Below, piece by piece: positions 1-12,906 of a stretch of DNA of 14,291 nucleotides (the stretch's first letter is position 1; each line of letters starts with the position of its first letter). This DNA is from Macrostomum lignano (taxonomy: Eukaryota), in contig NIVC01001555.1 of the NCBI GenBank assembly GCA_002269645.1, positions 1 through 14,291 on the forward strand, written 5' to 3'. The notes under the pieces are model-generated. The model was not told the DNA's origin. It was given only the letters and a program-made list of their open reading frames with translations, and made no database searches. A program made the position numbers and the translations under genes.

Positions 1-1886
1 TCTATCTATACTATCTATCTACTTCTATCTATCTGTCCTATCTATCTATCTATCTATCTATCTATCTATCTATCTATCTATCTATCTATCTATCTGTCTA
101 TCTATCTGTACTATCTATCTATCTATCTATCTATCTATCTATCTATCTATCGATCTATCTATCTATCTATCTATCTATCTATCTATCTATCTATCTATCT
201 ATCTATCTATCTATCTATCTATCTATCTATCTATCTATCTATCTATCTATCTATCTATCTGTCTATCTATCTGTCTATCTATCTATCTATCTATCTATCT
301 ATCTATCTATCTATCTATCTATCTGTCTATCTATCTGTCTATCTATCTATCTATCTATCTATCTATCTATCTATCGATCTATCTATCTATCTATCTATCT
401 GTCTATCTATCTATCTATCTATCTATCTATCTATCTATCTATCTATCTATCTGTCTATCTATCTGTCTATCTATCTATCTATCTATCTATCTATCTATCT
501 ATCGATCTATCTATTATCTATCTATCTATCTATCTATCTATCTATCTATCTGTCTATCTATCTATCTATCTATCTATCTATCTATCTATCTATCTATCTA
601 TCTATCTGTCTATCTATCTGTCTATCTATCTATCTATCTATCTATCTATCTATCTATCTATCTATCTATCTATCTATCTATCTATCTATCTATCTATCTA
701 TCTATCTATCTATCTATCTATCTACCTATCTATCTATCTATCTATCTATCTATCTATCATCTATCTATCTATCTCTATCTATCTATCATCTATCTATCTA
801 TCTATCTATCTATCTATCTATCTATCTATCTATCTATCTATCGATCTATCTATCTATCTATCTATCTATCTATCTATCTATCTATCTGCTATCTATCTAT
901 CTATCTATCTATCTATCTAATCTATCTATCTATCTATCTATCTATCTATCGATCTATCTATCTATCTATCTATCTATCTATCTATCTATCTGTCTATCTA
1001 TCTATCTATCTATCTATCTATCTATCTATCTATCTATCTATCTATCTATCTATCTATCTATCTATCTATCATCTATCTACCTATCTATCTATCTATCTAT
1101 CTATCTATCTATCTATCTATCTATCTATCTATCTATCTATCTATCTATCTATCTATCTATCTATCTATCTATTATCTATCTATCTATCTATCTATCTATC
1201 TATCTATCTATCTATCTATCTATCTATCTATCTACCTATCTATCTATCTATCTATCTATCTATCTATCTACCTATCTATCTATCTATCTATCTATCTATC
1301 TATCTATCTATCTATCTATCTATCTATCTATCTATCTATCTATCTATCTATCTATCTATCTATCTATCTATCTATCTATCTATCTATCTATCTATCTATT
1401 ATCTATCTATCTATCTATCTATCTATCTATCTATCTATCTATCTATCTATCTATCTATCTATCTATCTATCTATCTATCTATCTATCTATCTATCTATCT
1501 ATCTATCTAATCTATCTATCTATCTATCTATCTATCTATCTATCTATCTATCTATCTATCTATTATCTATCTATCTATCTATCTATCTATCTATCTATCT
1601 ATCTATCTATCTATCTATCTATCTATCTATCTATCTATCTATCTATCTATCTATCTATCTATCTATCTATCTATCTATCTATCTATCTATCTATCTATCT
1701 ATCTATCTATCTATCTATCTATCTAACTATCTATCTATCTATCTATCTATCTATCTATCTATCTATCTATCTATCTATCTATCTATCTATTCTATCTATC
1801 TATTCTATCTATCTATCTATCTATCTATCTATCTATCTATCTATCTATCTATCTATCTATCTATCTATCTATCTATCTATCTATCT
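1..1886. repeat. (TATC)n/(GATA)n microsatellite array 1, truncated by window start
   Basis: Continuous TATC units with scattered TGTC, TCGA, TACC, TAT and TCATC variants; ends abruptly at CACAG 1887-1891. Confidence 0.99.
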
Positions 1887-2931
1887 CACAGTTTCCCTAT
1901 GCCGACCAAAAGCCGAAGCTGGTACAGCTCGCATCACCGCCAAGCAAGAGTACCTCAACAAACAAACAGTCGTCCACATGGCCAGCAGTACCAAGGTGTG
2001 CGTTCGGCTGTGAGGCGACTATCTCCAGAACATGGCCGGCAGTTTGATCAGCGCACGTGACGGCGATGTCAGATCTAGAAGCCGCCATCGCCAAAGAGAC
2101 CGCGCTACGCAGGACAGGACGGGCGGCGACCGGCAACAACGTCGGAATGCAGGTGGGTCGCTGACAACCGCCGCGTCCGGAGTCGCCCGCCAAGTCAACA
2201 GCTTTCGTGCTGCTCACCACCTGGAAAATTGGCAGGTGACACCATCTTCGATCCGACTAAAGTCTCAGCAGCTGAAACACTAATCAGGCCTGCAGTGCCC
2301 ACGGAATCGACAAAATCGCGGATTGCTGAGAACGCCGATCAGTGGGAAGTCAGCACGCTAGACACAATGCAGAGCCATTATGAGATCAGCATCCATCATC
2401 TAAGCTGCTGAACTTCTGGAAGCCAGGAAGGACGCTGACCCTTCTGATTGGGAAACCGGCTGGCAAGTTCGGTTTTCACTGGGCGGCGAAGGACCTCGGC
2501 AGAAGATTCAGCTGCAGCCCTGATCTGCTGACAATACCGGCTGAAAAAAATGTCCATCGAGCTGAAGGTTACCTGAATTTACTGCTAACAAAGGGTAGGA
2601 TATCTCTTCTTTGATACTGTGATTGTAAGCAACCAAACCACCAGCTCTATGGGGGTTCCCGTTTTCAAAACCTCTTGTCTGGGGTTGGTGGGTTCGAATC
2701 AACCCCACCAAGCCGCCAGCCCTGTGACAACTGAGCAGGGGAGGGAGCAACAGCAGGGAATCGTCCCTCCAGCCCTTCAAACGGGCATGGAAGAATCTCC
2801 CGACTGGCGAGGCTTTAACGAGGAACCGAGCATGCTAAGCCATACGGACGAGGACAACAAAGCTTGCCCGCCGATTTTTTCCGACAGAAGAGCCGCCTGA
2901 AGGGCTCAATTCGCAAATGCAGGGTCCAGTT

Positions 2932-9063: not shown

Positions 9064-12000
9064 TATCTATTTATCTATCTATCTATCTATCTATCTATCT
9101 ATCTATCTATCGATCTATCTATCTATCTATCTATTTATCTATTTATCTATCTATCTATCTATCTATCTATCTATCTATCTATCTATCTATCTATCTATCT
9201 ATCTATCTATCTATTTATCTATCTATCTATCTATCTATCTATCTATCTATCTATCTATCTATCTATCTATCTATCTATCTATCTATCTATCTATCTATCT
9301 ATCTATCTATCTATCTATCTATCTATCTATCTATCTATCTATCTATCTATCTATCTATCTATCTATCTATCTATCTATCTATCTATCTATCTATCTATCT
9401 ATCTATCTATCTATCTATCTATCTATCTATCTATCTATCTATCTATCTATCTATCTATCTATCTATCTATCTATCTATCTATCTATCTATCTATCTATCT
9501 ATCTATCTATCTATCTATCTATCTATCTATCTATCTATCTATCTATCTATCTATCTATCTATCTATCTATCTATCTATCTATCTATCTATCTATCTATCT
9601 ATCTATCTATCTATCTATCTATCTATCTATCTATCTATCTATCTATCTATCTATCTATCTATCTATCTATCTATCTATCTATCTATCTATCTATCTATCT
9701 ATCTATCTATCTATCTATCTATCTATCTATCTATCTATCTATCTATCTATCTATCTATCTATCTATCTATCTATCTATCTATCTATCTATCTATCTATCT
9801 ATCTATCTATCTATCTATCTATCTATCTATCTATCTATCTATCTATCTATCTATCTATCTATCTATCTATCTATCTATCTATCTATCTATCTATCTATCT
9901 ATCTATCTATCTATCTATCTATCTATCTATCTATCTATCTATCTATCTATCTATCTATCTATCTATCTATCTATCTATCTATCTATCTATCTATCTATCT
10001 ATCTATCTATCTATCTATCTATCTATCTATCTATCTATCTATCTATCTATCTATCTATCTATCTATCTATCTATCTATCTATCTATCTATCTATCTATCT
10101 ATCTATCTATCTATCTATCTATCTATCTATCTATCTATCTATCTATCTATCTATCTATCTATCTATCTATCTATCTATCTATCTATCTATCTATCTATCT
10201 ATCTATCTATCTATCTATCTATCTATCTATCTATCTATCTATCTATCTATCTATCTATCTATCTATCTATCTATCTATCTATCTATCTATCTATCTATCT
10301 ATCTATCTATCTATCTATCTATCTATCTATCTATCTATCTATCTATCTATCTATCTATCTATCTATCTATCTATCTATCTATCTATCTATCTATCTATCT
10401 ATCTATCTATCTATCTATCTATCTATCTATCTATCTATCTATCTATCTATCTATCTATCTATCTATCTATCTATCTATCTATCTATCTATCTATCTATCT
10501 ATCTATCTATCTATCTATCTATCTATCTATCTATCTATCTATCTATCTATCTATCTATCTATCTATCTATCTATCTATCTATCTATCTATCTATCTATCT
10601 ATCTATCTATCTATCTATCTATCTATCTATCTATCTATCTATCTATCTATCTATCTATCTATCTATCTATCTATCTATCTATCTATCTATCTATCTATCT
10701 ATCTATCTATCTATCTATCTATCTATCTATCTATCTATCTATCTATCTATCTATCTATCTATCTATCTATCTATCTATCTATCTATCTATCTATCTATCT
10801 ATCTATCTATCTATCTATCTATCTATCTATCTATCTATCTATCTATCTATCTATCTATCTATCTATCTATCTATCTATCTATCTATCTATCTATCTATCT
10901 ATCTATCTATCTATCTATCTATCTATCTATCTATCTATCTATCTATCTATCTATCTATCTATCTATCTATCTATCTATCTATCTATCTATCTATCTATCT
11001 ATCTATCTATCTATCTATCTATCTATCTATCTATCTATCTATCTATCTATCTATCTATCTATCTATCTATCTATCTATCTATCTATCTATCTATCTATCT
11101 ATCTATCTATCTATCTATCTATCTATCTATCTATCTATCTATCTATCTATCTATCTATCTATCTATCTATCTATCTATCTATCTATCTATCTATCTATCT
11201 ATCTATCTATCTATCTATCTATCTATCTATCTATCTATCTATCTATCTATCTATCTATCTATCTATCTATCTATCTATCTATCTATCTATCTATCTATCT
11301 ATCTATCTATCTATCTATCTATCTATCTATCTATCTATCTATCTATCTATCTATCTATCTATCTATCTATCTATCTATCTATCTATCTATCTATCTATCT
11401 ATCTATCTATCTATCTATCTATCTATCTATCTATCTATCTATCTATCTATCTATCTATCTATCTATCTATCTATCTATCTATCTATCTATCTATCTATCT
11501 ATCTATCTATCTATCTATCTATCTATCTATCTATCTATCTATCTATCTATCTATCTATCTATCTATCTATCTATCTATCTATCTATCTATCTATCTATCT
11601 ATCTATCTATCTATCTATCTATCTATCTATCTATCTATCTATCTATCTATCTATCTATCTATCTATCTATCTATCTATCTATCTATCTATCTATCTATCT
11701 ATCTATCTATCTATCTATCTATCTATCTATCTATCTATCTATCTATCTATCTATCTATCTATCTATCTATCTATCTATCTATCTATCTATCTATCTATCT
11801 ATCTATCTATCTATCTATCTATCTATCTATCTATCTATCTATCTATCTATCTATCTATCTATCTATCTATCTATCTATCTATCTATCTATCTATCTATCT
11901 ATCTATCTATCTATCTATCTATCTATCTATCTATCTATCTATCTATCTATCTATCTATCTATCTATCTATCTATCTATCTATCTATCTATCTATCTATCT

Positions 12001-12906
12001 ATCTATCTATCTATCTATCTATCTATCTATCTATCTATCTATCTATCTATCTATCTATCTATCTATCTATCTATCTATCTATCTATCTATCTATCTATCT
12101 ATCTATCTATCTATCTATCTATCTATCTATCTATCTATCTATCTATCTATCTATCTATCTATCTATCTATCTATCTATCTATCTATCTATCTATCTATCT
12201 ATCTATCTATCTATCTATCTATCTATCTATCTATCTATCTATCTATCTATCTATCTATCTATCTATCTATCTATCTATCTATCTATCTATCTATCTATCT
12301 ATCTATCTATCTATCTATCTATCTATCTATCTATCTATCTATCTATCTATCTATCTATCTATCTATCTATCTATCTATCTATCTATCTATCTATCTATCT
12401 ATCTATCTATCTATCTATCTATCTATCTATCTATCTATCTATCTATCTATCTATCTATCTATCTATCTATCTATCTATCTATCTATCTATCTATCTATCT
12501 ATCTATCTATCTATCTATCTATCTATCTATCTATCTATCTATCTATCTATCTATCTATCTATCTATCTATCTATCTATCTATCTATCTATCTATCTATCT
12601 ATCTATCTATCTATCTATCTATCTATCTATCTATCTATCTATCTATCTATCTATCTATCTATCTATCTATCTATCTATCTATCTATCTATCTATCTATCT
12701 ATCTATCTATCTATCTATCTATCTATCTATCTATCTATCTATCTATCTATCTATCTATCTATCTATCTATCTATCTATCGATCTATCTATCTATCTATTA
12801 TCTATCTATCTATCTATCTATCTATCTATCTATCTATCTATCTATCTATCTATCTATCTATCTATCTATCTATCTATCTATCTACCTATCTATCTATCTA
12901 TCTATC
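9064..12906. repeat. (TATC)n/(GATA)n array 3 (~3.84 kb)
   Basis: TATT and TCGA variants in the first ~155 bp, essentially pure ~9218-12778, few variants near the end. Confidence 0.99.

Follow-up and report, generated by a model that had tools for sequence, protein, structure and literature searches.

The 14,291-nucleotide stretch of Macrostomum lignano DNA analyzed here (contig NIVC01001555.1, assembly GCA_002269645.1; hereafter the window) is dominated by a single (TATC)n microsatellite array of 8.3 kb, which spans positions 1–12907, is interrupted by two plus-strand insertions and has its left end outside the window. Both insertions, termed element 1 and element 2, are recognizable as Penelope-like retroelements (PLEs), element 1 with the features of the canonical, endonuclease (EN)-bearing type (EN+ PLEs). 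Tandem Repeats Finder identified (TCTA/TATC)n at 1–1886 (95% matches) and 6358–12907 (97%), and the base composition across most of 1–12900 is that of pure TATC repeat, 1887–6357 being the exception. The array and its insertions comprise the following features, given with the domains of the elements, including reverse transcriptase (RT):

1–1886, plus strand: array segment A, (TATC)n, more degenerate than segments B and C (91% of bases in perfect runs) and continuing beyond the left window edge.
1887–6357, plus strand: element 1, a full-length-sized PLE of 4471 bp that starts with CACAG and ends with TTTCGCAT.
1887–3335, plus strand: 5′ region of element 1 without recognizable coding homology, GC-richer (52–58%) than the rest of the element.
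3336–6114, plus strand: remains of a single PLE open reading frame (ORF) with N-terminal domain, RT, linker and EN, identified from the ORF list and by tblastn.
4626–5132, plus strand: RT core (Pfam RVT_1, 40.5 bits, E 3.2e-10, curated cut-off 29.6).
5459–5485, plus strand: CX4CX2C zinc-finger-like linker (DCGNLSCRPC) between RT and EN, read in a third frame between two frameshifts.
5581–5694, plus strand: GIY-YIG EN core (Pfam GIY-YIG, 20.7 bits, just below the cut-off of 22.6).
6253–6298, plus strand: minimal type-I hammerhead motif of element 1 (CUGACGA, A, GACC-N7-GGUC, GAA, AAUU, C/GGUU; model R1, 35 bits, E 1.6e-7).
6358–8916, plus strand: array segment B, (TATC)n, 2559 bp, whose first ~55 units repeat the pattern of segment A at 515–800 and whose longest perfect run has 311 units.
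8917–9064, plus strand: element 2, the 148-nt 3′ module of a diverged PLE subfamily, which starts with (C)ACAG and ends with TTTTGCAT.
8949–8994, plus strand: minimal hammerhead motif of element 2 (CUGACGA, A, GGCC-N7-GGCC, GAA, AUAU, C/GGUU; R1, 30.6 bits, E 2.5e-6).
9065–12907, plus strand: array segment C, (TATC)n, ~3.84 kb, with five variants in the first 36 units, 891 perfect units and a degenerate distal edge.

Reading the junctions by eye (a slash marks the boundary), we find that element 1 is joined to the array as ...TATCTATCT/CACAGTTTCCC at its 5′ end and as ...TTTCGCAT/TATCTATC at its 3′ end, and element 2 as ...TATCTATC/ACAGCCAAT and ...CTTTTGCAT/ATCTATTTATC, respectively. Both elements are oriented alike and have TATC on their sense strand. 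A preliminary description of this DNA had placed all four junctions in TATC on one strand, which is what the junctions display; it is also a trivial consequence of both insertions occupying one array, and because only two events in one array are involved, the four junctions are not independent. The same description correctly noted nearly pure arrays of 2.5–3.8 kb behind the 3′ ends: 2559 bp follow element 1 (6358–8916) and ~3843 bp follow element 2 (9065–12907), with 98% and 98.8% of bases in perfect runs, respectively. On the 5′ side of element 1, the array measures 1886 bp and is cut by the start of the window. A target-site duplication is unreadable at either insertion, because each lies inside a simple repeat.

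The RT piece of element 1, searched against 5.8 billion proteins, retrieved 295 relatives from fishes, amphibians, amphioxus, corals, echinoderms and many metagenome contigs, many of them combining RVT_1 with GIY-YIG (PF01541). The best match, P0001, is 75% identical in the RT and 69% identical over 186 aa in its EN part; the closest protein matches, none above 75%, derive from metagenome contigs or from contaminant contigs of metagenome-assembled genomes. A protein search with the EN piece (5500–6111) gave no match, which is an index miss, since P0001 is 69% identical. The EN (VVYAILCKTCNDRCIYVGETGG) carries two Cys residues between the GIY-like and YIG-like motifs and His residues after them, characteristic of the CCHH type. 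Further motifs comprise GKNF at 3932–3943, PADK(G) at the 4264 frameshift and YIDD at 5004–5015, and the linker has a counterpart, HCNLDCRLC, in the relative L001. The identification as PLEs follows from RVT_1 and GIY-YIG, the CCHH and CX4CX2C motifs, the 295 homologs and a PLE-type hammerhead, all of which were found, in agreement with the preliminary description. A CX2-5CxxC linker marks Neptune/Nematis-type PLEs (PMC8557442), and from this motif element 1 is provisionally assigned to that group.

The coding region of element 1 is decayed. Frame changes, traced by tblastn with eight homologous proteins (from P0001–P0014), lie near 3848–3878, at 4264 and 4509, and at ~5441–5459 and ~5485–5500, leaving ORF pieces at 3474–3848, 3878–4279, 4267–4578, 4527–5471 and 5428–6114. 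N-terminal homology to ORF1 of the related locus L084 starts at 3336. Upstream of this point, region 1887–3335 has no detectable homolog except for two weak tblastx matches (L023 and L032); within its 1.45 kb, a 141-bp tandem duplication is located at 2914–3130 (91% identical over a 46-nt core). A search for terminal direct or inverted repeats found none, and there is no partial-tandem structure; element 1 thus lacks a pseudo-long terminal repeat (pLTR). This is a trait of the individual insertion and not of the protein family; 5′-truncated and single-unit PLE copies are common (bioRxiv 10.64898/2026.07.22.740005). All protein and RNA hallmarks of EN+ PLEs that were tested are recognizable in the sequence, the pLTR being the sole missing feature.

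About 70 nt before their 3′ ends, both elements share the block CCTGACGA-A-GRCC-N7-GGYC-GAA-(AATT or ATAT)-C-GGTT. We built a covariance model of helices I and II (R1) from 13 aligned hammerheads of distant relatives only and searched the window with it unfiltered. R1 detects exactly two sites (35 and 30.6 bits), the next best scoring 6.6 bits, and also recovers the expected sites in L001 and L084. Helix II covaries (GACC/GGUC, GGCC/GGCC, GGAU/AUCC), the change in element 2 being compensatory with respect to element 1; helix I of element 2 contains one mismatched pair, and helix III is a 4-nt palindrome in both motifs. These traits correspond to the minimal hammerhead ribozymes (min-HHRs) described for PLEs, in which helix II is preceded by a bulged base, helix I is short, and helix III, small and palindromic, can form only between two molecules (PMC4209133). 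Rfam scans of the whole window and of 6200–6360 reported no hammerhead, a silence that is expected because PLE motifs are variants with a loop-less helix III (PMC4209133). Cofolding of two hammerhead copies with ViennaRNA did not return the canonical dimer and is not used as evidence. Both window elements, then, carry a PLE-type minimal hammerhead motif that is a candidate ribozyme.

Element 2 is 69% identical to the last ~150 nt of element 1. Its hammerhead is closer to the 3′ end of L001 than to that of element 1, and it therefore belongs to another subfamily. Directly after the array, (C)ACAG is present at both insertions (1887–1891 and 8916–8920) despite sizes of 4.47 kb and 148 nt, and TTYGCAT is the shared 3′ end. 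Since its start and end both match those of element 1, element 2 may be a short non-autonomous element sharing both termini, instead of the product of random 5′ truncation.

The window family itself is represented by two copies in one array, and flanks were therefore surveyed in relatives from public assemblies. Exact-pattern scans for the family hammerhead in viral, metagenome and genome collections gave no matches and also missed the carrier L001, whose contig was not included; a protein-guided scan of genome contigs returned five distant contaminant loci only. The closest group, with 52–75% RT identity, consists of L001, L002 and L084. L001 ends in ...GACTTTC/(TCTCTG-like)n, L002 is a 5′-truncated copy preceded by (TCTG)n, and the 3′ end of L084 is a degenerate run grading into (TCAT/TCAG)n. 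The 5′ junction of L002 (59–72) reads (TCTG)nTC/ACAGACAGACAG, the latter being a snap-back copy of the target repeat. In the more distant set of 79 metagenome loci (33–46% identity), 3′ ends abut (GT)n in L003, (ATGT)n in L004, (TC)n in L009, a C run in L026 and (TA)n in L076. (ACAT)n flanks L027 on both sides, and L094, located on a long-read contig of 2 Mb, is bracketed by (TA)n of ~70 bp at its 5′ end and ~50 bp at its 3′ end (3821–4000 and 8137–8186); a (GATA)25 stretch lies immediately upstream of its 5′ (TA)n flank. No repeat flank was seen at L083 and L095. In sum, a simple repeat adjoins all three closest loci, both window copies and eight more distant loci.

Fish relatives (~46% RT identity) include several copies and fragments with sense-strand hammerheads among (CCCTAA)n or degenerate C-strand telomeric repeats, the telomeric repeat being confined to the sense strand (loci L085, L086/L087 and L088). 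L085 lies within the last 33 kb of a 34.27-Mb contig of Hemibagrus guttatus, its copy at 4874–6400 including the EN part, and L086/L087 are from Syngnathus acus. These loci look like EN+ PLEs residing in telomeric or subtelomeric arrays of teleosts and share the polarity of the EN-deficient Athena and Coprina elements; our literature search found no paper on this setting.

Judged from these flanks, the lineage characteristically inserts into simple repeats, and the repeat motif differs from family to family. The preliminary description had proposed a GATA/TATC-specific system; the single orientation in the array and, as a lineage trait, insertion into simple repeats stand, while specificity for TATC as such does not follow from two insertions in one array, the nearest relatives lying in TCTCTG-like, TCTG and TCAT/TCAG repeats. 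For EN+ PLEs, a bias toward microsatellites has been published, with (TA)n as the target of Naiad and Hydra and (CA)n/(C)n of Chlamys, and the CX2-5CxxC linker has been proposed as its mediator (Craig et al. 2021, PMC8557442). No paper naming TATC or GATA as a PLE target was found in our literature search. The window is thus a case of the published bias, with a target motif that appears to be unreported.

To reconstruct the history of the array, segments A, B and C were parsed into perfect-unit runs and interruptions, yielding 37, 15 and 7 perfect runs, respectively. The density of 1-nt indels drops from ~0.7% in A to 0.23% in B and 0.03% in C, so that purity increases from A through B to C; this unevenness excludes uniform sequencing noise and indicates that the segments differ in age or turnover. 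A paired variant, TGTC-(TATC)2-TGTC, occurs four times in segment A and once in B (permutation p ~1.5e-4). It is part of a higher-order pattern, TGTC(TATC)12-13TGTC(TATC)2TGTC, at 272, 400 and 551 (period 128–151 nt), which recurs at 6386, 28 nt past the 3′ end of element 1, and there the subsequent units match the last copy in A (~25–27 units, TACC, 8 units). The ~55 units beside the 3′ end of element 1 (6358–6610) mirror the block of A at 515–800, with which the tandem series of three higher-order units ends; this likeness is compatible with unequal exchange and also with 3′ transduction of a donor flank. From the recurrent variant pattern it follows that block duplication shaped the array. 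The first variants lie 7 units from the 3′ end of element 1 and 0–10 units from that of element 2, and the runs of 311 and 891 perfect units begin ~172 and 36 units from these ends, respectively. Element 2 is preceded by 83 perfect units and followed by 36 units of which five are variant. Remnants of element ends (GCA, ACAG, CAC) were not found inside the 8288 bp of array.

At 12908, the distal edge of segment C joins unique DNA. This flank (12908–14291) is rich in other repeats, with (AGAC)30 at 13242–13363, (GACATAAACA)8 at 13395–13475 and a 24-nt repeat that begins at 14025 and runs past the window end, pointing to a genome very rich in simple sequence repeats (SSRs) and reminiscent of SSR-rich genomes like those of penaeid shrimp (PMC7878876). 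Long microsatellites are common contig break points. We also considered whether GATA might serve as a telomere-like repeat, the window then being a chromosome end; the polarity would fit, no other support was obtained, and the idea was set aside. A tRNA search found none.

Taken together, these results are probably best explained by two independent insertions of repeat-seeking PLEs into a (TATC)n/(GATA)n array that grows and shrinks by ordinary means. Element 1 would be an old copy of autonomous size whose RT-EN frame is now frameshifted, and element 2, which belongs to a second subfamily, would be either a copy with strong 5′ truncation or a short non-autonomous relative, in both cases retaining the 3′ module with the hammerhead. 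Anatomy, family, hammerhead motif and the flanks of relatives are observed; from them we infer which strand is nicked, how the target is chosen and why the arrays are long. The element protein, with RT, CX4CX2C linker and GIY-YIG/CCHH endonuclease, would recognize and nick the repeat, and the freed 3′-OH would prime reverse transcription of the element RNA (target-primed reverse transcription). The repeat could be chosen by endonuclease and linker, through base pairing to repeat units that end the RNA on its 3′ side, or in both ways. The kilobase size and purity of the arrays would be due to slippage during replication and to unequal exchange, both before the elements inserted and afterwards, and not to synthesis by their RT.

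Several points weigh against this explanation. It concerns a single locus, where the two insertions, sharing one array, do not count as independent support for TATC specificity; the frameshifts of element 1 and the array lengths are moreover those of the assembly alone. Insertion into a uniform array does not predict that the repeats just 3′ of element 2 are variant-rich (5/36) next to 83 perfect units on the 5′ side. Nor does it predict that element 1 is followed directly by a copy of a block located ~1.1–1.3 kb upstream of its 5′ end. Both oddities could mean that repeat sequence arrived with the RNA; unequal exchange explains both single cases as well.

Elements without any TATC preference could also simply have persisted in long arrays that are poor in recombination or genes. 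Only one locus is at hand, its flank is dense in simple repeats, suggesting a repeat-rich region, and element 1 is decayed, all of which such passive accumulation would accommodate; the same process has been proposed for Drosophila Waldo elements near CA repeats (PMC3812793). We nevertheless regard it as unlikely, because a simple repeat lies at the element end in three of three closest and eight more distant loci, because it is present on both sides wherever both ends can be read (L027, L094 and the two window copies), because the flanking motif changes by family, and because two different subfamilies share one orientation in the window.

The array might instead descend from the first insertion, which would have brought a short (TATC)n tail into DNA with a short repeat or none; slippage would have expanded this tail, which later drew in or tolerated additional copies. 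That microsatellites can originate from retrotransposon tails is accepted (PMC3812793), segment C lies between element 2 on its left and unique DNA on its right, and a relative (L084) displays a gradient from degenerate to pure repeat away from its 3′ end. This origin is inseparable from the favored insertion into a pre-existing array as far as the first event is concerned. In both window copies, L002, L027 and L094, however, the 5′ junctions also lie in repeat, and insertion into an existing repeat is therefore the rule; accordingly, we attribute a similarly low probability to a microsatellite born from an element tail.

The preliminary description had gone further and suggested that the RT itself may lengthen the array in a telomerase-like manner. 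Here, nicked (GATA)n would pair with a (UAUC)n-ended RNA, and reiterative or tail-only copying would extend the 3′ array to kilobases. Multi-kilobase arrays indeed follow both 3′ ends; at element 2, variant-rich proximal repeats face a perfect 5′ side, as if a degenerate RNA tail had been followed by reiterated perfect units; and segment A contains three tandem copies of the block beside the 3′ end of element 1, as tail-only insertions would produce. All of these patterns are equally produced by slippage and unequal exchange. Tails of long interspersed nuclear elements (LINEs) that arise from template slippage comprise tens of bases, not kilobases, and long GATA arrays of the Bkm type exist without PLEs. 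More broadly, in the fish relatives it is the telomeric C-strand that lies on the sense side, the polarity of EN-deficient PLEs, which bear reverse-complement telomeric repeats at their 3′ ends and prime on G-overhangs via these complementary repeats (PMC8557442), and penaeid shrimp genomics has linked Penelope and other transposable elements to SSR expansion (PMC7878876).

Such lengthening would place new repeats between an element's 3′ end and the older array, and array lengths give no clear sign of it. The 5′/3′ lengths are >1886/2559 bp for element 1, 2559/3843 bp for element 2 and ~70/50 bp for L094, so that no 3′ excess is apparent at element 1, whose 5′ segment A measures at least 1.9 kb, and the (TA)n of L094 is short and no longer on the 3′ than on the 5′ side. 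The perfect runs of 311 and 891 units do not abut the 3′ ends, a discrepancy from which a degenerate RNA tail could rescue the lengthening model; the recurrent variant pattern in segment A marks block duplication, and element-end remnants are absent from the array. Only one PLE, Poseidon of Anolis, has been reconstituted in vitro. It cuts the two DNA strands at AT-rich positions and can insert without its hammerhead; its reverse transcription starts internally and without homology to the cleaved DNA, which speaks against priming by pairing, with the reservation that Poseidon belongs to a different clade without the linker (PMC11167929). RT-driven lengthening of the array is thus not borne out at this single locus, and we consider it very unlikely.

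Also very unlikely is targeting read by the RNA and not by the protein. Here, read-through transcription would give each copy a 3′ tail of the repeat flanking its donor, and this tail would anneal to that repeat elsewhere, wherever its ends are nicked or exposed; close relatives would thus come to lie in TATC, TCTG, TCTCTG, TCAT and telomeric CCCTAA, and full or tail-only events would add repeat blocks.

Under the favored explanation of two repeat-seeking insertions into a slippage-prone array, the window provides a clear example of PLE microsatellite bias with a tetranucleotide target and full family hallmarks. It adds that the flanking repeat shifts by family within one protein lineage, telomeric repeats in teleost fish included. 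The loci thereby set up the question of whether targeting is read by the protein, through zinc-finger linker and endonuclease, or by the RNA tail. Were repeat addition by the RT true, microsatellite expansion would be tied to a relative of telomerase, for which the present data hold no positive support; were targeting read by the RNA, an EN-bearing relative of telomerase would contribute measurably to kilobase microsatellite growth.

The window arrays resemble Bkm-type GATA satellite arrays in their kilobase-scale (GATA)n and differ from them in that Bkm-type arrays are described without dependence on retroelements. The elements share with Neptune/Nematis-type EN+ PLEs the CX4CX2C linker, N-terminal GxKF and DKG motifs, a hammerhead near the 3′ end and insertion into simple repeats (PMC8557442), and depart from them in that the window copy has neither pLTR nor partial-tandem structure. 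In contrast to the published EN+ PLE targets (PMC8557442), the target here is a tetranucleotide, (TATC)n. The hammerhead motifs are built like those of PLE min-HHRs and non-LTR retrozymes, with a CUGANGA core, bulged A, 4-bp helix II, GAAA, palindromic helix III and short helix I (PMC4209133; bioRxiv 10.64898/2026.07.22.740005). As a hammerhead-bearing fragment of ~150 nt, element 2 resembles a solo unit; it differs in being a single copy in a microsatellite, in forming no tandem multimer and in its helix I mismatch.

One-orientation integration into a particular simple repeat is also known from Waldo (ACAY), Mino (AC), Kibi (TC), Koshi (TTC) and Dong (TAA), presumably through endonuclease specificity and target-primed reverse transcription (PMC3812793). 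These elements belong to an unrelated class with an APE-type endonuclease, a LINE RT and no hammerhead (PMC3812793). Repeats also alternate with elements in one polarity in Athena and Coprina (Gladyshev and Arkhipova 2007, as summarized in PMC8557442), whose sense strand carries the repeat complementary to the strand that primes, an arrangement that (TATC)n and the two elements display here with (GATA)n as the presumed priming strand. By that summary, Athena and Coprina lack EN and occupy natural chromosome ends, the repeats between them being made by telomerase and not by the element, in contrast to the window array, which ends in unique DNA on its right.

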